Origin: Geosiphon pyriformis uo1
Lineage: Eukaryota > Fungi > Glomeromycota
Assembly: GCA_016748015.1 (NCBI GenBank)
Contig: JAAOMT010000492.1
Coordinates: forward strand, 4,747 to 57,655
Direction: 5' to 3'
Length of the DNA: 52,909 nucleotides
Below, in pieces: positions 2,496-36,779 of the stretch; position 1 is the first letter of the stretch, and every line of letters starts with the position of its first letter. The notes under the pieces were generated by a model. That model worked only from the letters and a program-made list of their open reading frames with translations, had not been told where the DNA came from and ran no database searches. The position numbers were made by a program, and so were the translations under genes.

Positions 2496-3645
2496 AATTT
2501 AACCTTTAAAAAATGGCATTACTAAACAGGTTAACTATGAATAAATTTAAGTAGCTATAGGGCACAAATTACGCCAAACAAAGTCTAATTTGTAGAATAA
2601 CAGCAACAACAACAATAATGATAAAAATGATTTAGCAAAAAAGTTTCTCAATTTCTCTCTAAACTAAATTCGGTCTAATATATATTAAGGGAATTTCTTC
2701 TCTTACATTATCTATAGGAAAGTTTTTATAAAACAAACTAATTAGCAAGCCTAAATAGGTTGGGCGCAAAAACACCTCTTTTCACAAAAAAAAAATCCGT
2801 TCAGCCAATCCCGAAAGATCGCTCTGTAAAAGTCAAGATTAGGTTATATTATTTCTCGCAAACAATGAATGTCGAAATGTATGTTGAAATGCTCAACGAA
2901 CATCTTTACGAGATTCAAGAATTAATTGGAAAAGGTAGCGGGTCTAGAATAGAAGTAATCTTACTCCAGAATTTATTAAGGATAATATTTTCCAACTTCT
3001 GAAGGAAAATTAAAAAAAAGGTCAAAAATTTTTGGGGAATAGTTTTAGAGGAATATAAATTGCTAAAATCATTATAAAATACCAAGTAAATATGTAGCTG
3101 CCAAAAATTTATGAACGCGATACATGATAATAGTTATTATTATTATTATTACTTTGTTGCTGTTTTTTCTTACTGGTAACAACAGACAAAGAGTCTCAAA
3201 TGATACAGTTGACAGAATCAGAAACTATATAAAGACATATTAAAATAATGTCGCAACAATGACAACGGTAGAAATTCATTGTGTTTTGACTCATTGATTT
3301 AATTATTTATAAAGTATATTAAAAATTTTATTTTAATTTACTTTTTTTTTATAAAGGAATTTAGTCTATTTGCCAAATGTAATAAATAAAATTTAATATG
3401 TACTTTATGCTTGTGTTAATTTTTAACACTTATTTCTTTTAATATTTATTATATATTAGACAATTATTAATAGATTTAATTGTGATCAGACATTTGAATT
3501 TTCTTGTTTTGTTACCCCAACATCTCCTTATTCCATCTTGTATTGCCAAAATATCTGAAAAGCGTTGGGATGCTAATCTTGAGAATCGTCCTACTGCCAA
3601 AGAAGTTGACAAAAAGTTGGAGGAGCTTTACTGTATATATATGGT
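2496..3645 (+). repeat. Local segmental duplication, copy 1
   Basis: Highly similar to 20512-21470 (e.g. GGTTGGGCGCAAAAA..CAGCCAATCCCGAAAGATCGCTCTG); copy 2 lacks ~2940-3130. Confidence 0.9.
3240..3645 (+). pseudogene. Shuffled C-terminal kinase fragments (tail, microexon, C-lobe)
   Basis: LIPSCIAKISEKRWDANLENRPTAKEVDKKL aligns with the C-lobe of the full genes. Microexon GAATTTAGTCTATTTGCCAAA at ~3357. Confidence 0.7.
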
Positions 3646-21580: not shown

Positions 21581-21749
21581 TAAATTATAAGTGATAAACT
21601 TTATAATTAAATAATCTATTGTTTAATTTAATAAGCGAAACTTTTTTTTATTTTAATTTTCAAATATCATTTTTAAAACAGAAATTATTCACTTACAAAA
21701 GACGACTATTAATACACCCAATCACTTAATCGTGATCGATAATCTTCTT

Positions 21750-22483
21750 AGCAAAAAGTATATCGCTAATGGCCTTTGTTCAATTCATTATTCTGGTATA
21801 GTTCATCGTGACCTACACTCGGGCGACATCCTACAATTAGAAAAATATAGAGTAAATATTTGCGACCTTGGATTATGTCAACCCACAAACCATGAAGCAA
21901 CAACGACAGGTAAAGACGCGAAGAAAAAAAAGATATATTGAGTGATTCCATGCATTCCACCAGAAGTTTTAAGAGGAGAAAAGTTTAGAATGGCTGGTGA
22001 TATTTATAGTTTTGCATTGTTATTATGGGAATTAGCAACAAGAAAGCCTCCTTTTCATGATCGTTCTCATGACCACTTTCTCGTGATGGATATCCTTTAT
22101 AATGACATTAGACCTAAGATTACTCTCACTTATTCCACCTTCTATTGCCGAAATAATTGTAAAGTGTTGGGATGTTAATAATGAGAATCGTCCTACTGCG
22201 AATGAACTTAGGTTGAAGTTCGAGGGCTCGTCCACGGATTCCGAGTATATAGGATTAGAGAAATACGTAGAAGGAATATTAAAGAACGGCTCAACAATAA
22301 CAACAACAACGCCAACGCGTATTCATCCAGGAGCGGTTTATACAAGTCGTGTTTTAAGTTTGCAAATAATTGAAGAAACAAGAGGTTAGTTTATCTATTT
22401 TTATATAAATATTTTAATTATTATACATATTAAAAATTTATATTAGTTTACTTCATAAAAGGATTAGTGTATTTCTCTGAAGG
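21750..22483 (+). pseudogene. TKL kinase C-terminal half, frameshifted and 5'-truncated
   Basis: HRDLHSGD, CDLGL, PPEVLRGE, CWDVNNENRPTA and IHPGAVYTSRV are split over three consecutive ORFs. Microexon-like segment at ~22461-22482. Confidence 0.88.
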
Positions 22484-24906: not shown

Positions 24907-26343
24907 TTAATCAATATAAAAATAGATAAACTGACCTTTTGTCTCTTCAAACATTTGCAAACTTAAAACACGACTTGTATAAATTGCTTGTGGATGAGTT
25001 TTTATCTTTGTTGTCGTTGTCATTATCGCTGTTTTTGAATGATTTGTTGTCGAGTCGTTTTTCAACATTTTTTTAACGTATTTCTCTGATTCTAAAAACT
25101 CTGAATTATAAGAAAAACGTAGTTCCCCCAACTCATTTTTAAGTTCTTTCGCAGTAGGACGATTCTTGGGATTAGGATCCCAACACTTTACGATCATTTC
25201 AGCAATTGAAGGTGGAATAAGTGGGTAAGTAATCTTAGGTCTTTGACCATTTAAAATATCCATTATAAGAATATGATCATGAGAACGATCATGAAAAGGA
25301 GGCTTTCCTGTTGCTAATTCCCATAATAACATGGCAAAACTAAAAATATCACCAGCCATTCTAAACTTTTCTCCTCTAAATACTTCTGGTGGAATGTATG
25401 GAATGACTCCATATATCTTTTTTTCCTTTGTTGTTGTTGCTTCATGGTTTACTGGTTGACATAATCCGAGGTCTCCAATATTTATAAATTGATTATCAAA
25501 TTGTAGGATGTTACCCGAGTGTAGGTCACGATGAACCATACCAGAGGAATGAATTTGTGAAAGTCCAGAAGCTATATTCCACGCGATCAATAATTTATCA
25601 GACCAACTCATAGAATGAAAATTTATTGATAAATATTTTCTCATGTCTCCATGTTCGGCAAACTGCATCACAATTCCATACTCGAGTGTTTCAGCGTTTT
25701 GCGTAATCCCCAATATTGAAGAGATCTGTTGTAAGCACCCACCGTTATTCATAAACATAGCTCTTTGAATATTTAACTGTAAAAAAGTAAATAAATAATA
25801 TCATAAATAAACGATAAGATATAATAAATAATATACTGTAAATAAATAATAGATAAATATTAATTAATAATATATATATATAAATATAAATAATAATACT
25901 TTGTTTACCTCTTTAAACACTTCTGAACTGTTGGTTTTTATAACTTTTATTGCTACTTCAGTGCCTATTCTTTCTCTTTCAAATTCCAATGAACCATGAT
26001 GTTTTATACTATATTTATTAATTAATCCATCAATTAGGGTTGCTTTATAAATTATACCGAACCCTCCTTTAGCAATTTCATTGATATTCGACAAACGCTC
26101 CCATGGAATCCATTCACAGTAATATAATTGAATATAAGGTGGAGTATAGATTGAATTTTTAATTATTTCATTAACTTCTTTATTCCCGCTTGAAAAGTCT
26201 TTATAATGTTTTTCAAAAAATATGAACCAGCATGCCGCACACGAATTATAATCTTTATTATCTTTAATACTCCTTTGACACCGTTTACATTCGTTGCAAT
26301 CATGAACATATGGACGATATCTATTAATTTCTTTGTATTCCAT
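24907..26343 (-). CDS. TKL-family protein kinase, apparently intact. Exon 1 26343-25909, intron 25908-25777, exon 2 from 25776; probable further donor at 24935 and 21-nt microexon near 24837-24857
   Basis: Same phase-0 intron as the 917-2348 gene. Motifs EIAKGGFG, VAIK, HRDLHSGN, GDLGL, YGVIPYIPPE, GKPPF, CWDPNPKNRP. Confidence 0.92.
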
Positions 26344-29300
26344 GATTTGGATAAAGAACAAAGGATAAAGAAGGATAAAATATGAATAAGTTATTATTCA
26401 AAGAGGTTTTCTTTAAAAGTTTATTTAATAGTACATTTAGAAAGTTATTTGTCTAAAGGCGAGTTCTTATTTTATATTGTTTCTTCTATGTTCCCCATAG
26501 TGTTACAAATCAATTTATTAACCTTATTCATCATATTAAATAGGTTTAACTATCAACAAATTTAAGTTTCTTAAGTACACAATATACTAAAAAAGTTTAT
26601 AATTGTCTCATTGTATTGTTGGGCTAAATGACCAGTTCAATTTCTTTGTAGAACAACAACAACAGTAACAATAACAAATTAGGCGCATAAAAATTACTGT
26701 ATGATTTAATCATATGACCCCTATCATTATTAATCATTTTCTGTTTTACTATGAATAAAAGCATAAACACTGTTTCTTAAATTTTGGCCTAATGCTAAAA
26801 CAAATTTTAGCATTATCCTTTTAAATATCATAATATCACATTTCATAATTTAAAACAGTATATTTTATTGATAGGTGAACTTAATTTTTTAAACTTTTTT
26901 TCGTATAAAGAATAACTTTGACTCGAAATAAAGCAATTTTTTTAAATAATATTTTTAATAAAAACACAATTATTTATATTCAAATAGTATATTTAAAATT
27001 CAGCAATAATACGCGTGTAAAGAAAATCAAGTTACATTATCAGTTTATCCTTAGAGATTCTTAATAAATTTTTTTTGAAATTGGCAAAAAAAAGAATCTT
27101 ATATTCTTTCTATATAAGGGAAAATGTATTTGCTTGTAATCGATGGCATTTAATAGCATAATTCTAGAAAAGCAGTTTTTAATAAAGAAATCATTAAGCA
27201 TTTGCCACACTGCAATTATGAGCATATAGATGAGTTCTTCTAATTTCTTTGGGTTCCATGATGTGAATAAGTGCGTAAAAAGCATATAATGTGAATAGAT
27301 TATATTCGAAGAGCGTAGGTTTAGAAATTTTTTTTTTAAAGCGGAGTTGGTATTTTTACTGTTTCTTCATATTAACAAATCATAAAATGTCGTTATTCAT
27401 GAAACTAGTATTCGATGCAAATCATACTAAATTGGTTTAAAGCTCAAAATGAAATAAATATAGGGAATCAAAGACATTTTAAAAATTTAAATATTAATTC
27501 GAATTTTCATAACATTAAAAAATTTATCTTTTAAAATGCAATAATATATATATTTTTATTAATAGTGTTAGTTTTAGTTTGTATAACAGTAAAACAGAAA
27601 AGTTTTATTAACAGCTCCTTTTAGTTTCTTGTTTTTATTAGCTCTTGGTTTCTTTTAAACTAACTTTGAGTTCTTCAATCGAAAACTTTCCGATTATTAA
27701 TTAATCGATTAAAGGTATTTTAAAGAGATTCTCTTAGGTATATCTATAAATAAAGCTTTATAAACCAATTAATTAGAGAATATCAAAAAAAGGTAGTTTA
27801 AATTTCAAATGCCAGAGTGATCCCACAACTGCTAAAATCAAAATTTCGCCGCTAATTTACATTAGACCTCAAAATCATTTAAATCTATCAAATTTCAAAT
27901 CATGTTGTTTAATCATTTTTAAAAGCAAGAACTCGATAATAAAATTAAAGAGTTAATGAAATTTAACCGTTACAATATTATTTAACAAAAGAATTTTAAT
28001 TTTTTAGTATAAACTCTTAAATATGTAGATATGTAGAAATGCAATTTTTCTTAACTTATAGAGAATAAGCTTCTCATAATTTAAAAAATTGATAAAATAA
28101 TTAAAAACTTAATTTTAAAAAAAGCAAGTATTTTTAAAATTTTTAAAAAAATACATAAGCAATTATAAGTTATAATGCTCGAATAATAATATTTAAATAT
28201 AAAATAAATTTAGTTATCATTTTATTGTCTTAATATTTTTTTCTTTTTAAAAAGTAATAATAAAATCTTTTAATATTAATCTAATTTTATTATATTAATT
28301 AAAGTTAAAATAAAATTAATTTTTATTGCTCAATTGTAAATTTTGTAAAATTAAATAACATTATTAAAATACCACAATATAATTTATTTTGAATTAAATA
28401 AAGATTTTTAAACAAAAGATATTTAATTTACATTTAAAATTGAATATAAATATAAAATATAAATTTGAAAAAATATATTATAAATAAAATTTTGATTATT
28501 TGTTTTATTTACTGTTTTTATTTTTTTAATGTTCTTTTTAAAATATAAAGTTTAAAACTTAATCAGTTATTTCTTTATTTTGGAATATTAACAATTTTTT
28601 TATATGAAAAAACTCGCTGCACTAATGTCATACCTCCAATCTATTGTGAAATCCTTTCATTTAAGTGATGAATTTCCTAATAAAAGATCTTGAATAAAAT
28701 ATCAAATTTAGGTAATATAGAGTAGATAATCAATTATTTAAGTAATTATTTTGCTCAACTGGCTTCCAAGTTAGAAATATTAGATTTTTACCAATTTTTT
28801 TTGAGAAACCTTTAATCTAGTTTCGCCCTTATACCGGTTCAAATAGAGGTTCACCCTTTAAAAAATTATTATAACTAAAATAAAATTTTCTTTTTAAAGT
28901 TCAAAGTAAAAGACTTTGATAAGAATTCCAAATCTAATTATATCATAATTTTTATTTAAATACTTTTCAGGTTTGAATAACCTGAAAAATATCGAACTAT
29001 TTATTTATTAATTTATTTTTTATTTATTTTATAGCCACCTCTATGTTAATTTAATTAATATGTTTAATTTCCATAAAAATTTCAAATGCTTTAGAATTAT
29101 TATCATGAAAATTTATAAAGCCGATTAAGTTTTTATTGTAATTTTAAATTTCTAAAAATTTACCAAAGTCATTTTAACTCCAATTATATAGATTAAACAA
29201 AGTTACTGAAAATGTTTATTATTAGACAAATAATTAATTCAATATAAAGTGTTTTCTAAAAAAAAAGGAATATGCAAAATAATAAATATTGATTATTTCT

Positions 29301-30019
29301 TTTTTTAATTTTTATAAAAATATAAACATATTTTTATTCTATCTTAATTTCATAAAATTTTATAAAATAAAAGTAAATTATTTTTGTTCATTATTTAAAG
29401 ATCATAAATATAAAATTTAAAATCAATTTATAAAATTTGTTAAATATTGACATTTAAAAAAAGCGATGAAAATTTTTCACAAACGCAATATAATATTTGA
29501 TCACTATCTAAATTTTTAATATTATTTGATATTAAAAACTCTCAACATACAACTTTTCTTAATACGAAATCAAATTTAAAAAATATTCAAATCAAAAACT
29601 TTTATTTTCAACTTCTTAATAATTCTGATCAATGATATATCTATTATTAAATTATATGAAAATAAACTTTTTTTAATTATAAAAACCATCAAGCTCATCT
29701 ATTAATAGAATATATTATTATGAAATGATTTTCAGTGAATAAATAAATTTAATTTACTCCTCGAATTACATTTAAAATTTTGAATATCTCTGATACTTTA
29801 TTGATTTTCATTTAAAGTCTTATTTTTTAATTTAAATTACACATTTTAACTAAAGATCTGAAAATGATTAATGAAGCAACGATTAAATTATATAGCATTT
29901 TTCATACTTCACATGAAACCTAATTGTTTTTATACTTGTTTCGCTATAAAGGAATCAAACTATTTGTTTAGAATATGAAACTTTATGATTTTTAAAAATA
30001 TAGAAACAGCCTTTAAAAA

Positions 30020-30143
30020 TCTTTCTAAACGTATTATCGAATAAAGCTTTAAAAAAAACCTCTTCGAATAATAATCTATTCACATATTATATTTTTTCCT
30101 TTATCCTCTGTCCACTGTCCACATCATGGGAAACAAAGAAATT
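30020..30143 (+). pseudogene. Kinase upstream region plus first 6 codons (MGNKEI), interrupted by the bacterial-like segment
   Basis: tctaaacgtattatcgaataaagctttaaa...ctcttcgaataataa...ccacatcATGGGAAACAAAGAAATT matches 14455-14560, then diverges. Confidence 0.8.
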
Positions 30144-30199
30144 TCATCAAGTTTATCTAAATTCTTTTGAGCTTCTTCGGCTCATATTACTTTATAAAT
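30137..30199 (-). pseudogene. RelE/ParE-superfamily toxin, N-terminal fragment
   Basis: With TGA (30182-30184) read as Trp it gives IYKVIWAEEAQKNLDKLDEIS, resembling the RelE beta1-alpha1 start. It begins ~8 nt after the antitoxin-like stop. Confidence 0.62.
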
Positions 30200-30207
30200 T
30201 TATTTCT

Positions 30208-30741
30208 TTAAGAATGAAATAATTTATTTCAATTTACTTTTTTTAATCCTAAACTTTCCAGCAAATCATTCTCGGTATGAAATTATAGATTTTTTTTTCT
30301 TTTCTTTTTTGTAATATTTTTCTAATTTACTAACCTTTCTAAATATCAAGTTAAAGTCTTTAAAAGGTAAAATTCACGAGGTTTATAGATAAGATTTTCA
30401 AACCTTTTTAAGTTTTTTTCTAAGTGTTGTTTAGTTTCTTTAGGTAAATTTATAGTAGTTAACCTAATTTGGTTTTTAATTCTTTTGAACTTTTATCAAT
30501 CTTCTCTAATGTATATTTTTTTTTAGTCTCGTTATAAAATCCCTAAAGCTTTCCAAACTGAAAATTTTTGAATATCCTCTAACTTTTCAATATACTTAAC
30601 TAAAGTTTCATAAACAATAAATTCTTTAGGTTGCTCACTAACTTTTTTAATATTTTCAAGACACCTTTCTAATTTTTTAGGAAGTTCTAATTTAATTTCT
30701 AACTTTTTTAATTTAGATTTTGTAACAATCGATTTTATCAT
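30208..30741 (-). pseudogene. RelB/CopG-like antitoxin with two tandem RHH-like units (177 codons)
   Basis: One frame without frameshifts. Unit 1 is LELPKKLERCLENIKKVSEQPKEFIVYETLVKYIEKLED; unit 2 is INLPKETKQHLE...KPREFYLLKTLTWYLERL...FHTENDLLESLGL. Contains 3 TGA and 5 internal TAA/TAG. Confidence 0.6.
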
Positions 30742-30765
30742 ATTTGTTATTATTTATATTATAGT

Positions 30766-31080
30766 TTATACTAATATAGATTTTACACTATACAGTTGTT
30801 TTGGTTTATCAATTTTTACTACTCCCACATTAGTTCTTTCCATTTAAGCTAAACTAATATTCTGACTATCTTTAATTACTGCTTTAAAATTGGGAATAAT
30901 ATTTTTAGCATCTTTAATATTATCTCATTTGCTACTTCTTAAACTAATCTTTTCTAAGTTAATTAAGTTTGATAAGTCTAGTTGAATAATACTTTTACAA
31001 TCAGTTATTCATAAGTTCTTAATTTTTTTACTCTCATCTTTATCAAATTTAAGCACTTGAACTGCTTTCTGCCAATTATT
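30766..31080 (-). pseudogene. Code-4 gene fragment with an LRR-like segment
   Basis: KIKNLWITDCKSIIQLDLSNLINLEKISLRSSKWDN; both W are TGA. One internal TAA. Confidence 0.5.
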
Positions 31081-31223
31081 CAAGAAAGATAATTAAAAGG
31101 TTTGTTTTCAGTTTTGTTTTCTAATTTACTTTATTTTTGTAGATGAGGAAAATAGGGATAAAAAAAACCACTAGAACACCAACACAAAAAGGGTGATTAA
31201 AACATTTAATTTAAAATGAAATT

Positions 31224-31990
31224 ATGGATAGAAATAATTTAGTGCAAACATTCGAAAATTTAACAATTAAAAATGATCTAGAAGAATTTAAAGAAAAGGT
31301 TATCCAAGAAATAGCAAAATTGTGAAAACAATTAGAGAAAATCAAGAACAACTTCTTGACTAAAATAAGCGGAATATTAACAACAAGAAAACTATTAAAG
31401 ATATTGAGAAATATTTAACTAATAAAAAGAAAAGGTTAAATGTTAAAAGGATTAATACTTCTTGGTCACATGACAATTATTACCATTTTAAAAAACATGG
31501 TTTAGACAGCAAGGTTAATATCCACTTTGACTATCCATTTGAGAAAGTATAAAGAAACTACAAACTAAGTTTCACTTGTAATATAAATTAACTAGTCGTA
31601 GATCTGTAAAAAAATCAGAGGATCAACAATAATCTTTTTTATGAATCTTGATATTTTATTACTACATTAGAAAATACTTATAAAAAAGTTTGTGATAATA
31701 GAAATGAGTGTCCTATTTGTGGTTATAATTGTGAAAAATATTCTTGCTCAACATTTTGTGAGTTTTGCCAAAAGAAAACCAATCTGGTTCAGAAGTGTGA
31801 TTGTCAAGCCAAAGAAGTTAAATGGGAAGTTAAAGAAGAAATAAAAAGTTAGTTCTTCCAAAAAAATTCTTCTTCTAATGACCATAATAATAGTGACAAT
31901 GATCAAGTTTATGACTATAAAGACTATGAGTATAAAGAATAAGAAAGAAAACTAATCTATATAATGACTAAAAGACAAGATATTTTATAT
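31224..31990 (+). pseudogene. Decayed hypothetical protein with a Cys-rich segment
   Basis: MDRNNLVQTFENLTIKNDLEEFKEKVIQE at the start; later ECPICGYNCEKYSCSTFCEFCQKK...KCDC. Contains stops and frameshifts. Confidence 0.45.
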
Positions 31991-31994
31991 TTAT

Positions 31995-32297
31995 TCTAAA
32001 GACAAACAAATAGTTTTCTTTTCTTATTATTAACTACTAAAACTGAACCTAAAACTGCTACTATTCTAACTAAAATTAATATATATAAAGTGAATAAAAG
32101 TTCGAATTGTGTTGTTTTCTTGTTTTAATTAAACCAACTCATTTCTTTTGTCTTTTAATTCTTGATTTTCTGCTGGGATTCGATTAGTTTTTTCTCTAGT
32201 TTTTTGTTTTAATTCTCTTAATTGTTTTTTTAAATGGTTTTTCTCCAGTACAAGTTTTTCTATCTCTTCTGTGCCTCTTATTAAATTTCATAATCTT
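31995..32297 (-). pseudogene. Coiled-coil protein fragment with a C-terminal hydrophobic segment
   Basis: RLW(TGA)NLIRGTEEIEKLVLEKNHLKKQLRELKQK...; IVAVLGSVLVVNNKKRK follows after a frameshift. Confidence 0.45.
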
Positions 32298-32618
32298 AAT
32301 ATAAAAAAAATATTTTCCCAATTATTCAAAAAAAATTAATACTTAAACAAATCAACGAGAAAAAAATCCTTGGCTCTCATGTGAGACAAAATGCTAACAT
32401 AATTGATGCACAGGTTGTTAAAAATAGCTAAAACAACTTTCTAAACTTCTTGTAAATTAATTTTCCTAGTATTTTTTGTAACATCGAGAACATGTGATTA
32501 AAATCACTGATTTGCCTTGATTATAACTGTCTCAATTCTTTAAAACTTTATAAGATAATTCATGTTTAAAAATAGGTAAAAAACAACCATGACAAATGAT
32601 AGGAATTTGTCGAGACAT
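32297..32618 (-). pseudogene. CxxC...CxxC Zn-finger protein with two predicted TM helices (code 4)
   Basis: MSRQIPIICHGCFLPIFKHELSYKVLKNW(TGA)DSYNQGKSVILITCSRCYKKY. After a frameshift: LFLTTCASIMLAFCLTW(TGA)EPRIFFSLICLSINFFW(TGA)IIG. Confidence 0.55.
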
Positions 32619-32839
32619 TTTGACAAATTATTTTTTTATCCTTAGAAATTTCCTCATTATTGCTTTGTCTCTTTCTATTTTCATTAATATTTTTATCTTT
32701 TTTTCTTACTACTTATTAGCCAAATTGAACCAATTACTAATATTACTGATCCACCAACAATTAAAGTTGGTTTGATTTAAGAATTATTTAAGAAAATAAA
32801 AGATTAAGAAATAGATAAAAAGTATAATTAAAATAAATT

Positions 32840-33088
32840 GTGAAAATAGAAAAATCGAAAGAAAAAATAAAGTTTTTTCTCACCAATTTGAAAGAAAATT
32901 TGGAGGATCAATTGAGTAATTCTATTAAAAAAAATAAAACAGAAATGAAAAAGTTAGTAGCCAAAAGATTGGCGGAAATAGAAAAAAAATGAAAAAATCT
33001 AAGAATCTTTTTATTAGTTGTTGTGTGTTTTTTAGTTCTTTTATTGATCATTGTTGGAGTATTTTTTTATTTGTCAAGAAATAGTTAA
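32840..33088 (+). CDS. 82-aa coiled-coil, tail-anchored membrane protein; open only under code 4
   Basis: GTG start; the single in-frame TGA (32990-32992) gives ...LAEIEKKWKNLRIFLLVVVCFLVLLLIIVGVFFYLSRNS*. TATAAT at 32823-32828. Confidence 0.6.
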
Positions 33089-33316
33089 TTTTAGTTGGTT
33101 GTGATAAAAGTAATTCTAGAAACTAAAAAAAAGATTAGAGAATGAGACATAAAATAAATAAAGAATGAGACATAAAATAAATAAAAAATGTGATAATAAC
33201 TAGTATCTCCTCTGTATGAGCTCTGCAATCTATATTTTTTTGTAGTTCTTATTTACTTAATAAGAAACTCACACTGAATTTGTTTTCTTCATGTTTTTTT
33301 TCTATTCTTTTAATTG

Positions 33317-35106
33317 CTATTCAATTTCTTCATTAGCTTTCCGTCCTTGTTGGAAATAGACAATTAATTCTACTAATCCTAGCACCACAACAGCCACAAT
33401 TAAGAAATCTGCTAATATTAGTGTATTTGAAGATGGTCCTCTTGGTGGTTGTTTTTCTTGAGCTTTTTTTATTTTTGCAATCTTAGCTTGAATTTCTTTT
33501 ATCAGATTTGTAATAACTTTTTTTTCAGAATCTTCTAAATTATTAGTAAATACACCATTCTGAATAGTTCCACTTTTAGTATATTCTTTTAAGTCTTTCA
33601 ATTACTTTTCTAATTGAGTTTTTTTATTTTCATTTTTTAAATTTTTTCCAGAATAATTAGGGTTGAAAAATTTAAATAAATCAATTAGTTTTTTAGCTTT
33701 ATCAACTTACTTTCTAGATGCTTAGCGAGCTTTCTCTGAGGAATAAGTTCGTTTTTAAATTTTTCTTTTTCTGTAGCCTTTAATATCATTTTCATTAACA
33801 CTATTAATTTTTGCTTTAAATGAAGCTTCATCAACAAAATCTTTGTTTCAAATCTTTCTTAAAAATTCTGCTTGCTTTTCTTTAAAAGTTTTTTGCTCTT
33901 CTTTAGTATCTGTGTATAATTTTAATCTATAGTCAGCATAACCACTTCCATCAGTATGTTTATATATATTGATCATTTCTCGGCCACCAGTTTTGTTAGT
34001 TTTAGGTTTCTTTAATTTAGTTAATTTAGCAATATCTTTTTTAGTAGCACCTTTAACTCCGCAAATTTTCTCATGATTCCCACAGCTTCAAATGCAATTT
34101 TCGCATCATTATTTGTCATGCTATTTTTCATGGCAGTCCTTTTGTCTTTATCACCTTCAATTTTGTTGATTTCAACTTCTAATTCCTTTTTAAAAAGATC
34201 AAGAAGAGAATCATCAGGTTTAAGAGGTTTGTTAATTAGTATTAAGATTTGGCTGTTTATTTCAATAATTTTATTTACTATTTTCTTCCTTCAATGTTGT
34301 TATATTTTTTTGTAGCTAGTATTGTTTTTCCCTGGGTTTTTCAACAAGTAATTGAATAATTTTGCTCTAGCTTCATTCAACTCTTTAATTTTATTAGATT
34401 GATAACTTTTGTAATTTTTTTCGAATGTTTCAATAAATTTTTTTATTATTTGGTAATTATCTTCAACTTTTTTCTTGGACCATTTAGTGCTCCGGCGTAG
34501 TTATTAAAATAATTGCTTTTATTTCAATCTTTGCCATGATTTGCTTTGCTAATACATTTGTGATGCTTCAATGTATTATAATAATTATTTAGTATTTGAA
34601 ATTTACTTATCCTGTTTTCTTCAATTTTATTAAAATAAAGTAAACATTTGTTATTATTGACATCATATCTTTCATTATTTTTACTAATTATATTTTTATA
34701 AGGTATTTTATAAAAAAGTAAATCAATAATCTTATCAATATTTGGTGCTGTTCAAGCATTTATTGTCATTTTAGAATATGGAAAATTATCTATTCCAGTT
34801 TCCAATATTTAATCATTATTGTTAATCATACTTTCAGAATGATTACCATAACTTATAATAGAAAAAGAAATAAAGTCAAAAAATTAACAGGTTTAAAGCC
34901 ACAACATTTATTTCGTTTAGTTTCTTTGCTATAGTTACTGTTATTTATTACACTAATAAAAAATTTACCATCCTAAAAGAAATCAATTAATGCTTTGTGA
35001 TATTGAGTTATTAAAATTCCTTTGTATTTCTTATCAAGACTAGAAAAATACTTTTTAATTTCACTAACATTTAAACTGTTGAAATGAATTTTCTTAAAAA
35101 AGACAT
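33317..35106 (-). pseudogene. Large Lys/Asn-rich protein with a C-terminal TM anchor (code 4), decayed
   Basis: Long near-continuous frames: TINAW(TGA)TAPN, HGKDW(TGA)NK, QHW(TGA)RK, RKIW(TGA)NK. Ends in PPRGPSSNTLILADFLIVAVVVLGLVELIVYFQQGRK. ATG at 35106 with TATAAT just upstream. Confidence 0.55.
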
Positions 35107-36779
35107 ACTAATATTATTATATAATTTAAAATTGCGATGAATTGATAATTGTATTGGGTTGTGATTAAAAAAGACAAGTTGTTTAAGCAGAAAAATGGCA
35201 TACTTTTACACATCTGATTTTCACAAAAAAAATTATTTTGCTAGCTTTACCACAATACTTTTATTTGCATAACACTCCTTTTAATATTTTTGGGATTTAT
35301 TTATTAATATGTAATTAAGGAGAGGTTTATTCATGAAAATAACTCAGATGAAAGTTATAATTATATCAAATCTAAATTATGAATTGTGAATATTTTCAAT
35401 AAAAATATTGATAGTACAATGCTGAAAGACTAAATTTTAACTCTCGATATTGGACACTAGAGAGATTAAAGTTGACATACTTTGAATATAAGAGATTTAA
35501 AACATCAATACTGGTAGAAAAGAGCAGAGTAAATAACGCAGTGAGTTTCTCATGTTGCTGAAACCATAGAATATATTCATTATTTATGCTAATCTCTATA
35601 ATTTTGATATATGCTATTAATCTACTATTGAAAAGAAAAGATATAACTAAAAAATAATGCTAATAGATAAAAATTTTTGCAGATTTTAAGGAATTTACTA
35701 AAAAAGTTGAGAGTTGTCTTTGGTAAATTATTTATTTAGATTTTATATTTTTTTAAAACTTTTGCTAACTAAAATATTGGAGCTTATGTGATTTTACCTA
35801 ATTAATTTCTACAATAAATTCATTCTTTATTATACATATAATTTAATTTTTGAAAGATAAAATAAAAATATTACTACGTTTTCACTGTGCATTATTATTA
35901 ACAGTTAAATGCTAATAACTTCTTCACAAATTAGTTTTTATATTATCTTTATTAAAAATAAAATTGCAAATGTGACAATTAAGTATTATGTTAGTTGTAA
36001 TTAATTGTAACTATATAATTTGAAATCCTCATCAAGTAAAAATTAAGCATTACTTTAATTGAAACTGATTGAGGTTTTATCTTTATTTTTTATGTATGCA
36101 ATCTTTTTTTCAATTAAATGTATTTTTATTTGACTAATTATTTATTTTACTTTTTTAATATTATATATAAATGATTTTATTATTTTTGTTTTTAATTTTA
36201 TAAAAGCTTTATAAATTTAATTGGTATGACGTTTGTTTTCTTATAAATCATGTTATATGTTTAATTTAATTTTATTTAAAGAAATAATAGATTGATCTTT
36301 AAATTTGTTTCTAAGAAAAACTTTTTTATATTATAAAGTGTTTTTTAAATAATATAAAACAAAATAGTGAAAACTATACATGTATAATAATTGATTAATT
36401 TCAAGTCAATTTTGTTAAATAGTATGTAAAAAACTTTGTCAATAAAGATAGCATTAACAAAAGTTTTTAGTCAAACTAGTTGCAAATTCCCAAACTCTCA
36501 TATATATTTTTGAATTGTTCATAAATTGCCAAATTTTAAAAACATAAATTGTCAAAAAAGTAAATAATAATAATAAAACTTAATTAATTCTGGCTAAAAG
36601 CTTAAATCTATAATAAATAATTAATCTGTTGAATTCATTTTTCTAAATTTAATTTGGATATAATTTTTTTTAGTAATGTCTATTAATTACGAATATGGAA
36701 TAGCAAGTTTGAATCCAAATGTTAAAAAAAGCTTTTAGTCTTAAAATCTTAAAATAAATTTTTAGATTCTGAATATTTA

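Follow-up and report, generated by a model that had tools for sequence, protein, structure and literature searches.

We identified, within a nuclear chromosome of the early-diverging fungus Geosiphon pyriformis, about 5 kb of DNA that is probably a random, non-functional fragment of the chromosome of a Mollicutes-related endobacterium (MRE; 'Candidatus Moeniiplasma'-like, genetic code 4) captured by its host. The block occupies positions 30144-35130 of the window, by which we mean the whole stretch of 52,909 nucleotides that was analysed. It is homologous to MRE genes, uses TGA within its frames, exists as a unique copy, and is contiguous across its junctions in two assemblies. The transfer from endosymbiont to nucleus that an earlier note on this DNA had proposed is largely supported, by solid MRE homologues for two frames, a TGA opposite a TGA-encoded Trp, and sharp joins to fungal repeats.

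A single-copy block joined to fungal repeats

The block measures 4,987 bp at ~24% GC and has only one copy in the 128-Mb G. pyriformis assembly, where it is embedded in a fungal contig of 80.9 kb and flanked on either side by repeats and genes of the fungus. On the left it abuts a short dispersed repeat (29996-30143), of which over 35 copies lie scattered across many contigs at 72-92% identity, every one of them stopping at 30143. The dispersed repeat units on the right (35131-36400) belong to a different family, with copies on contigs C733, C704 and C639 that begin precisely at 35131, and the portion 35316-36400 matches C733, C514, C625 and ~30 others. The limits proposed in the earlier note are exact, the repeat edges lying at 30143 and 35131. 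TKL kinase and BTB/BACK domains are present in the flanks on the same contig; the kinase at 24907-25800 (minus strand) has 99% identity to G. pyriformis G9A89_004049 and ~100 paralogues distributed over large contigs.

The continuity of the block with host nuclear DNA on both sides was observed on contigs of the probable source run. A single Logan contig (7,734 nt, depth 71.8), which comes from a second assembler and probably from the same source run as the genome assembly, crosses the left junction, traverses the entire insert and extends 360 nt beyond the right junction. It covers 29600-35491 with 0 differences, runs on leftwards, and has no loose ends at either junction. Its depth, a contig-level value, compares with 66-71 for the neighbouring fungal repeat contigs.

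Frames related to endobacterial proteins

Much of the right part of the block (33317-35130, minus strand) is a homologue of a tail-anchored MRE protein family, decayed and truncated at its 5' end. The members of this family are an ORF at 56007-58352 of G002, the MRE of Benniella sp. AD185 (CP125275), and two DhMRE paralogues of the G002 protein (E 7e-26 and 2e-9) at 211434-214715 and 396345-398393. Frame 34449-34808 (minus strand) matched the G002 ORF in tblastn with E 8e-9 and 47.8 bits, versus a maximum of 33 bits in 100 shuffles, and the reverse search gave E 5.7e-9. When a profile of the three MRE members was run against the window's six frames, it picked out this frame (E 1.3e-10) and no other, followed by a colinear weak match at 34303-34500; colinear weak matches extend as far as the C-terminal anchor of the relic, within 33320-33601. 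The conserved core of the family is present in the window copy (34449-34850), which further resembles the MRE members in having a coiled-coil region and, at its C-terminus, a membrane anchor. Unlike them, it is missing approximately the first 300 residues, which are absent at the junction, and a TAA at 34809-34811 interrupts it, as do frameshifts, one of them near 34500. No full-length open gene is present, and the copy is, as judged from its sequence, a pseudogene. A Pfam search of the MRE family found no domain, and the family has no known function.

At the left end, an intact 69-codon ORF (30532-30741, minus strand) encodes a predicted small helical RelB-like protein, which matched positions 3011-2865 of G002 (tblastn, 39% over 51 aa, E 3e-7, 41.6 bits; maximum of 100 shuffles, 31 bits); the G002 copy of this gene is itself broken by two stops. 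The ORF scored E 0.0017 and 18.6 bits with NCBIfam NF048017, whose cut-off is 50, so that no curated RelB/RHH model was matched above its cut-off. Pfam and PDB sequence searches gave no match, and the AlphaFold model (pLDDT 59.8) was unusable. A second, weaker RelB-like frame lies at 30325-30492 (minus strand; in-frame TGA at 30346-30348) and resembles the first at 26% over 47 aa (pairwise E 8e-4). Next to the junction, which cuts it, a reading frame of ~18 codons with an in-frame TGA (30144-30199, minus strand) may represent the N-terminus of a RelE/ParE/YoeB-type toxin; this stub falls below the length that a profile needs, and MRE ORFs offered no counterpart. The toxin-antitoxin pair suggested earlier is thus weakly supported, as an antitoxin scoring below the cut-off and the remaining codons of a possible toxin.

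Several other frames were read in the block. A leucine-rich-repeat (LRR)-like frame (30847-31092, minus strand), with in-frame TGA at 31009-31011 and 30925-30927, gave only weak matches to MRE LRR ORFs (E ~0.1). No homologues were found for three plus-strand frames at 31215-31415, 31364-31549 and 31610-31849, the last of which is Cys-rich with several CxxC motifs. A zinc-ribbon (CxxC...CxxC) frame at 32469-32627 (minus strand; in-frame TGA at 32532-32534) matched DhMRE ORF 3094-3624 weakly (tblastn, 36% over 42 aa, E 0.009) and ranked top in the window for an MRE zinc-ribbon profile (E 0.044), which is suggestive of a relation to the MRE protein. A coiled-coil ORF of 83 codons (32837-33088, plus strand), which ends in a membrane anchor, is open only if TGA 32990-32992 is sense: as had been remarked for 32840-33088, the standard code stops it at that TGA, and otherwise it continues through a hydrophobic tail to the TAA at 33086-33088. 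The CxxC frames described in the earlier note were recovered, and so were its coiled-coil frames with C-terminal anchors, of which there are two, each with a hydrophobic anchor.

Among the sources searched, the matches were specific to the endobacterial lineage. The earlier note had proposed a tblastn comparison with MRE and other Mollicutes, which gave solid MRE matches for the two frames described above (E 8e-9 and 3e-7); three flanking 5-kb blocks, used as controls in the MRE comparison, reached a best E of 0.001. Among 401 sampled Mycoplasmatales genomes, only G002 gave a real match. Fungal or viral best matches, which the note had named as evidence against a transfer, did not appear: the rest of the 128-Mb fungal genome contained no paralogues of the tested pieces and no match to the N-terminal part of the MRE tail-anchored protein, 1.84 billion representative proteins from public genomes and metagenomes yielded only spurious tandem-repeat matches, and plasmid and phage searches found nothing for the block. 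The available MRE genomes show low identity to the block (35-39%, ~140 residues in total), and most block frames have no detectable homologue. Overall, these comparisons place the homology of the block with the endosymbiont lineage rather than with host genes.

Composition and reading of TGA

The block contains 14 TAA/TAG-free frames of at least 80 codons in 5 kb, compared to ~4 per 5 kb in the flanks, which agrees with the tight packing reported earlier; open frames cover 0.66-0.83 of it, intron-free and on both strands. The A/T skew is strand-asymmetric within the block (-0.18 at 30-31 kb, +0.14 at 31-32 kb, -0.21 at 33-35 kb) and ~0 over most of the rest of the window, and G is enriched at codon position 1 of the candidate frames (0.21 vs 0.12). 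The GC content of 24% compares with 29.5-34% in G002 and DhMRE, the two MRE genomes with homologues, with 29-33% in MRE recovered out of fungal assemblies (PMC11423566), and with 23-25% in two Linnemannia MRE genomes. The TATAAT boxes that had been pointed out upstream of starts carry no signal, since promoter-like sites number 30 versus 35.2 ± 5.7 in shuffles, i.e., chance level.

In the candidate frames of the block (open for TAA/TAG), TGA and TGG occur 15 and 7 times, or 1.8% of codons, while the fungal ORFs of the same window contain 18 TGG and 0 internal TGA. TGA is thus preferred over TGG and the frames are closed only by TAA or TAG, the pattern of code 4. For MRE genomes, Trp makes up 1.0-1.7% of codons, and TGA accounts for 0.70-0.93 of these codons in four of five genomes and for 0.32-0.44 on the two contigs of the fifth. 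Because the in-frame TGA frequency in the block is close to the expectation from composition, the count alone is no proof of sense reading. At individual sites, three alignment modes all placed TGA 34752-34754 against a Trp that G002 encodes as TGA, in a column that reads W/I/L across MRE members, with Trp only in the closest homologue and Ile and Leu in the DhMRE paralogues; the second TGA of the same frame (34449-34808) was not aligned with Trp. TGA 32532-32534 stands opposite Trp in the weak DhMRE match, and two further aligned TGAs stand opposite T/A and K/R. The earlier claim that TGA falls at Trp-compatible sites therefore holds in one solid case (G002) and one weak case (DhMRE).

Origin of the block and alternative explanations

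We propose that an MRE fragment was captured into a repeat-rich, gene-poor nuclear stretch, most likely via end-joining at a break, which is how mitochondrial or Wolbachia DNA enters the nuclei of other hosts. Its cargo would be typical MRE accessory gene pieces, namely a doubled RelB-like gene, a toxin-like stub, LRR-like, zinc-ribbon and Cys-rich frames, and two tail-anchored coiled-coil proteins. Since the junctions run through the genes at either end, the block is no mobile element with termini of its own; with its terminal genes cut and others broken inside, it would be a piece captured at random that has no function in a nucleus using the standard code. There, each TGA, Trp in the donor, would act as a host stop, eukaryotic signals are lacking, and several genes carry TAA/TAG stops and frameshifts; such a block could not work in the nucleus and would be a fossil, presumably unexpressed, rather than a functional acquisition. 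The donor was presumably Geosiphon's own MRE, its lineage being suggested by relatives just 35-39% identical; the genome of this MRE is put at ~721 kb in a passage of PMC13315312 citing Sorwar 2024. The earlier note had read the internal TAA/TAG stops as an argument for decay in the host. They are no proof of it: pseudogenes already make up 7-35% of MRE genomes (PMC10507103), and the G002 RelB-like copy is broken too; decay may have begun in the donor or in the nucleus.

True MRE DNA from cells in the fungus might have been wrongly joined to fungal repeats, given that MRE contigs are known contaminants in Glomeromycotina assemblies (PMC10507103, PMC11423566), that both junctions lie at repeat ends, places prone to assembler mis-joins, and that the sequence is found in only one public run, the probable source run. 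We consider such a chimera very unlikely. The second assembler gave one contig over both junctions, with no differences or loose ends and at a depth similar to that of the neighbouring fungal repeat contigs; the flanking repeat copies are just 72-92% identical, so that junction reads are specific; nowhere else in the assembly did the tested pieces have an MRE-like copy, and MRE 16S primer sites were absent from it; and two independent mis-joins would be required for a 5-kb bacterial piece. Fungal mitochondria likewise read TGA as Trp, and the low MRE identity, together with a GC content lower than that of most MRE, could point to another code-4 donor, such as a mollicute outside the MRE, the mitochondrial genome of a fungus or a mitochondrial plasmid. 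This too has a very low probability in our estimate, as significant homologues occur only in MRE genomes, the sampled Mycoplasmatales apart from G002 gave 0 real matches, no tRNA, rRNA or other RNA family was found in or near the block, the block has no second copy in the assembly, and its gene content appears to have no mitochondrial counterpart.

The direction could also have been the reverse: the block would then contain ancient fungal genes that have become pseudogenes and belong to families acquired by MRE from their hosts, as with kinases and LRR proteins. There is good documentation of transfer from fungus to MRE (PMC10507103, PMC5982333), the flanking fungal TKL kinases match MRE ORFs with E down to 3e-56, and an LRR-like frame lies inside the block. 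What makes this direction improbable is that neither the 128-Mb fungal genome, in which the tested pieces and the N-terminal part of the MRE protein have no paralogue, nor the 1.84 billion proteins gave a real match, whereas the tail-anchored family occurs intact and in multiple copies in two lineages of MRE. Moreover, the fungal copy has TGA where the MRE homologue has Trp, the TGA:TGG ratio is unlike that of the adjacent fungal genes, and the packing is intron-free and on both strands. That the block is no coding relic, its open frames arising by chance in AT-rich DNA, would fit with the few TAA/TAG-free 80-codon runs expected per 5 kb at this composition, the chance-level promoter-like boxes and the many frames without homologue. 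This is scarcely credible in view of the E-values of 1.3e-10 and 3e-7 against the targeted database with clean controls and shuffles, an open-frame density 3-4 times that of the flanks, the codon-position G bias and the strand-switching AT skew.

Relation to known transfers and significance

Like the nuclear insertions of Wolbachia DNA in insects and nematodes, NUMTs and NUPTs, the block would be a random chromosomal fragment at a repeat-rich site, with cut end genes, pseudogene decay and no mobile-element termini. It differs from them in that the donor would be a mollicute-related fungal endobacterium and the host is an early-diverging fungus (Glomeromycotina), and in that its genes would be dead on arrival because donor and host genetic codes differ. 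We found no report of DNA flow from MRE to a fungal nucleus in the literature that could be searched. Between the same partners, host-derived genes have been described in MRE genomes (Naito 2015 and Torres-Cortes 2015, in the part of PMC5982333 that cites them), among them PknD/LRR kinases (PMC10507103), and the fungal TKL kinases of the window match MRE kinase ORFs. Those genes are functional in the bacterium and moved from host to MRE, whereas the block would be a non-functional relic in the fungus that moved in the opposite direction. MRE contigs mis-filed in fungal assemblies (PMC11423566) likewise represent MRE-like sequence within a published Mucoromycota assembly, but as separate bacterial contigs rather than as 5 kb inside an 80.9-kb fungal contig.

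Gene exchange between AM-type fungi and MRE has so far been described from host to bacterium only, and the block would represent bacterial DNA integrated in a fungal nuclear genome. Bacterial sequence in fungal assemblies is commonly thrown out as contamination, and the block is invisible to protein-based HGT screens because no standard-code gene model forms there; it thus sounds a caution for decontamination pipelines that judge sequence contig by contig, and offers a concrete locus for a PCR test of integration. It would also serve as the fossil of an MRE lineage, in a fungal species well known for its symbiosis with cyanobacteria, and as a natural example of a genetic-code barrier to functional transfer. 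We further entertain, more tentatively, the possibility that the Geosiphon nuclear genome holds several independent MRE DNA fossils, the block among them. If so, DNA would have flowed repeatedly from symbiont to nucleus in a fungus, and the code mismatch (TGA as Trp versus stop) would act as a one-way valve, which could explain why functional transfers are found only from fungus to MRE. The fossils would then date and type the past MRE lineages of the host.

Homologues in endobacterial genomes

Window positions 30144 to 35130 (4,987 bp) had been read, from the sequence alone, as bacterial DNA of the kind found in Mollicutes-related endobacteria (MRE), which read UGA as Trp. We located MRE genomes by scanning the genome collection with one MRE-specific 16S primer (from a preprint), which returned two genomes: the DhMRE chromosome and 'Mycoplasmataceae bacterium AD185' (CP125275; PMC10507103), which is the MRE found in Benniella sp. 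AD185 and has 615,212 bp. Their family comprises five genomes in the collection, and all five were searched by tblastn under code 4, using all TAA/TAG-free frames of the block as queries with X written for each TGA. As the earlier note had anticipated, this comparison gave solid MRE homologues, two in number and both in AD185. The main frame, 34449-34808(-), matched 57258-57503 with 35% identity over 86 residues (47.8 bits, E 8e-9), and the RelB-like ORF at 30532-30741(-), an intact frame of 69 codons, matched 3011-2865 with 39% identity over 51 residues (E 3e-7); the three other MRE genomes of the family (G003-G005) yielded no further matches. The controls showed no comparable match: three 5-kb blocks of the flanks, treated likewise, reached a best E of 0.001, and 100 shuffles per query reached at most 33 bits for the main frame and 31 bits for the RelB-like ORF. 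With phmmer, the main-frame match stood at 6.8e-8 and the RelB-like match was weaker (7.6e-5), because the AD185 counterpart of the latter is cut by its stops. Across 401 sampled Mycoplasmatales genomes, AD185 was the sole genuine match; two order-level matches (G299 and G375) were discarded, as both fell within a 680-aa protein that is unrelated.

General searches returned no relatives. Pfam and NCBIfam gave nothing above cut-offs for ten TGA-free block pieces, word-index protein searches with a 79-aa piece and the RelB-like ORF gave no candidates, and a HMMER search of a 75-aa piece against 1.84 billion representative proteins returned just two spurious tandem-repeat translations. There was no usable match in the ESM Atlas, no relative in the metagenome contigs scanned, and no match among plasmids and phages searched by DNA and by protein, where a 50-bp Peribacillus match was noise. 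An exact-protein search found no recorded protein identical to the RelB-like ORF, and no tRNA or other RNA families were found in or around the block. Most block frames are orphans for which no homologue was found.

Gene content of the block

The main frame is part of a long decayed gene running from 35130 to 33317(-), which has lost its first ~300 residues at the right junction. Its AD185 target is a 782-codon ORF (56007-58352) with a membrane anchor at its end, and this protein has two DhMRE paralogues (E 7e-26 and 2e-9). In the reverse search the main-frame match extended upstream over the TAA at 34809-34811 (E 5.7e-9). A profile built from the three MRE members picked out the main frame (E 1.3e-10) and no other region in six-frame translation of the window, apart from a weak colinear match that came next at 34303-34500(-) and implies a frameshift; weak colinear matches continue to the C-terminal anchor in 33320-33601. 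A coiled coil with a C-terminal anchor, as the earlier note described, occurs both in this gene and in the ORF at 32837-33088(+). Members of the MRE family (AD185 56007-58352; DhMRE 211434-214715 and 396345-398393) share a ~300-residue conserved core and, besides it, a coiled coil and an anchor at the C terminus. The family has no Pfam domain, was not found outside MRE and the block in the searches run, and gave no match at E <= 0.001 in 1.84 billion public proteins, which makes it a candidate for a surface or membrane protein specific to MRE.

At the other end of the block, the RelB-like ORF (predicted structure at pLDDT 59.8, too low for use in fold comparison) is followed on the minus strand, below 30741, by a second, diverged RelB-like copy (pairwise E 8e-4) and then by a toxin-like stub(-) of ~18 codons that is cut at 30144 and in which we see a likeness to the N-terminus of a RelE/ParE/YoeB-type toxin. 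Among MRE ORFs, the stub matched an unrelated coiled coil best. The proposed toxin-antitoxin pair has weak support: the RelB-like ORF has an MRE homologue, but no Pfam or NCBIfam match was above cut-offs and the toxin stub found no search support. The AD185 homologue (2865-3011, minus strand) is a pseudogene with two adjacent in-frame stops; it is flanked by genes for LRR proteins, close to where the chromosome record begins. A perfect GC-rich hairpin with a 6-bp stem (30168-30184) falls within the toxin-like stub, at a distance of 25 nt from the left junction, and terminator-like sites number 3 in the block versus 0.8 ± 0.9 in shuffles. The TATAAT boxes that had been pointed out upstream of starts proved to be at chance level (30 promoter-like sites versus 35 ± 6 in shuffles).

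Between these genes lie an LRR-like frame at 30847-31092(-), plus-strand frames at 31215-31849(+), one of them Cys-rich, and a zinc-ribbon frame at 32469-32627(-). The last matched a DhMRE ORF (3094-3624, E 0.009) and is the window's best match to the profile of that MRE family (E 0.044), a result that we count as no more than suggestive. Neighbouring MRE loci likewise encode zinc-ribbon, LRR and tail-anchored coiled-coil proteins.

Genetic code and composition

Candidate frames of the block hold 15 in-frame TGA versus 7 TGG, in comparison with 18 TGG and no internal TGA in the fungal ORFs of the window; in the five MRE genomes, TGA makes up about 44-93% of Trp codons. The ORF at 32840-33088 is, as had been claimed, open only if TGA is a sense codon: under the standard code it stops at TGA 32990-32992, and otherwise it runs on into a hydrophobic tail and then a TAA. 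The claim that TGA repeatedly falls at Trp-compatible positions stood for one solid column and one weak one, but two other aligned TGAs were not opposite Trp. In the solid column, TGA 34752-34754 aligned with a Trp of AD185 (tblastn and three MAFFT modes), a Trp that AD185 also encodes by TGA; with Ile and Leu at this position in the two DhMRE paralogues, the column is one of hydrophobic residues, not an invariant Trp. In the weak column, the low-scoring DhMRE match has Trp where the block has TGA 32532-32534. The residues opposite the second main-frame TGA (34524-34526) and that of the second RelB-like frame are T/A and K/R; pairing the former TGA with a nearby conserved Trp was supported by no aligner. 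Taken together, the aligned TGA columns, the TGA:TGG ratio and the ORF at 32840-33088 support a code-4 reading of the block. TAA/TAG-free frames of at least 80 codons are three to four times denser in the block than in the flanks, first codon positions of the block frames are rich in G, and the A/T skew, near zero over most of the window, switches sign inside the block (-0.18, then +0.14, then -0.21).

Junctions with fungal DNA

The Geosiphon pyriformis assembly comprises 128 Mb in 792 contigs. The window is very AT-rich (GC 10-42%) and has few genes, among them TKL-type protein kinases at 917-2498, about 21.7-22.4 kb (21657-22389) and about 24.9-26.4 kb (24907-26412), and a BTB/BACK protein at ~41 kb. 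The kinase at 24907-25800(-) has 99% identity to G9A89_004049, annotated as a hypothetical protein of Geosiphon pyriformis and lying on an 80,852-nt contig; ~100 Geosiphon paralogues come from contigs as long as 2.3 Mb, and the next matches are kinases of Rhizophagus, Diversispora and Acaulospora. These matches identify the host as Geosiphon pyriformis (Glomeromycotina), and the contig carrying the block is fungal nuclear DNA.

The limits of the block, 30144-35130, turned out to be exact, as repeat copies stop at 30143 and other repeats begin at 35131. On the left, 29996-30143 is a ~150-bp element dispersed over many contigs in >35 copies of 72-92% identity, of which the window's own contig carries three; the right end is common to the copies and coincides with the left junction of the block, and the element may be a MITE, a SINE-like element or a TE terminus. 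Its Logan contig depth is 360-470. On the right, 35131-36400 is a composite repeat, of which 35131-35317 and 35357-36400 are found again, in unchanged order, on another contig (C733) at 79-85% identity and parts are found on ~40 other contigs. The 4,987 bases of the block are single copy in the 128-Mb assembly, and no convincing terminal or target-site repeats surround it.

A mis-join of MRE DNA to a fungal contig would yield such an arrangement, and MRE contigs contaminating fungal assemblies are described in the literature on fungi and their endobacteria, next to host-to-MRE transfer (PMC10507103, PMC11423566, PMC5982333). In Logan, a second, separate assembly of public sequencing runs, one 7,734-nt contig (depth 71.8) spans 29600-35491 with 0 differences: it continues leftward, passes the left repeat and left junction, and runs 360 nt past the right junction to end at a high-copy repeat. 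Adjoining fungal repeat contigs have depths of 66-71, and among the loose ends listed (51 less-supported ones lie outside that list) none falls at either junction. Exactly one public run holds the block as sequence, probably the source run of the assembly, so the Logan support does not amount to independent reads; the block is absent from two other runs made from that sample, an absence that is no proof of silence. A chimera would nevertheless require two mis-joins, each repeated by two assemblers, and the assembly contains no MRE 16S primer site (<=2 mismatches allowed) and no second copy of the three tested block pieces. On this contig-level evidence we consider a chimera very improbable.

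Origin and direction of transfer

With genes cut at both ends and no element termini, the block points to the capture of a random MRE chromosomal fragment by the fungus. The parsimonious direction of transfer is from MRE to fungus, since the tail-anchored family is intact and multi-copy in MRE, absent from the remainder of the fungal genome and unmatched (E <= 0.001) in the 1.84 billion proteins, and the fungal copy is fragmentary and TGA-using; neither the three tested block pieces nor the N-terminal portion of the MRE protein had any other match in the fungal genome. The TAA/TAG stops, which the earlier note took as arguing for decay within the host, are insufficient alone, given that MRE genomes are pseudogene-rich (7-35%; PMC10507103) and the AD185 RelB-like copy is itself broken. 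The natural donor is presumably Geosiphon's own MRE, whose genome is put at roughly 721 kb (Sorwar et al. 2024, as cited in PMC13315312); the comparison here was made with relatives of low identity (35-39%). A large survey of horizontal transfer in early-diverging fungi named no mollicute donors.

The window's TKL kinases, with LRR-like parts upstream, match large DhMRE and AD185 MRE ORFs (E 1e-20 to 3e-56), and this kinase/LRR family is regarded in the literature as a fungus-to-MRE transfer (PMC10507103, PMC5982333). As these kinases flank the MRE-derived block, both directions of transfer would be exemplified <10 kb apart. In a standard-code nucleus each TGA would truncate the product, with further stops and frameshifts adding to this, and we infer that the block is a fossil, non-functional as genes. 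Fungal genes would stay readable in MRE, where TGG keeps its meaning of Trp and reading through a TGA stop merely lengthens the protein, whereas MRE genes would be truncated when read in the fungus. The mismatch in genetic code thus suggests a one-way valve between fungus and MRE.
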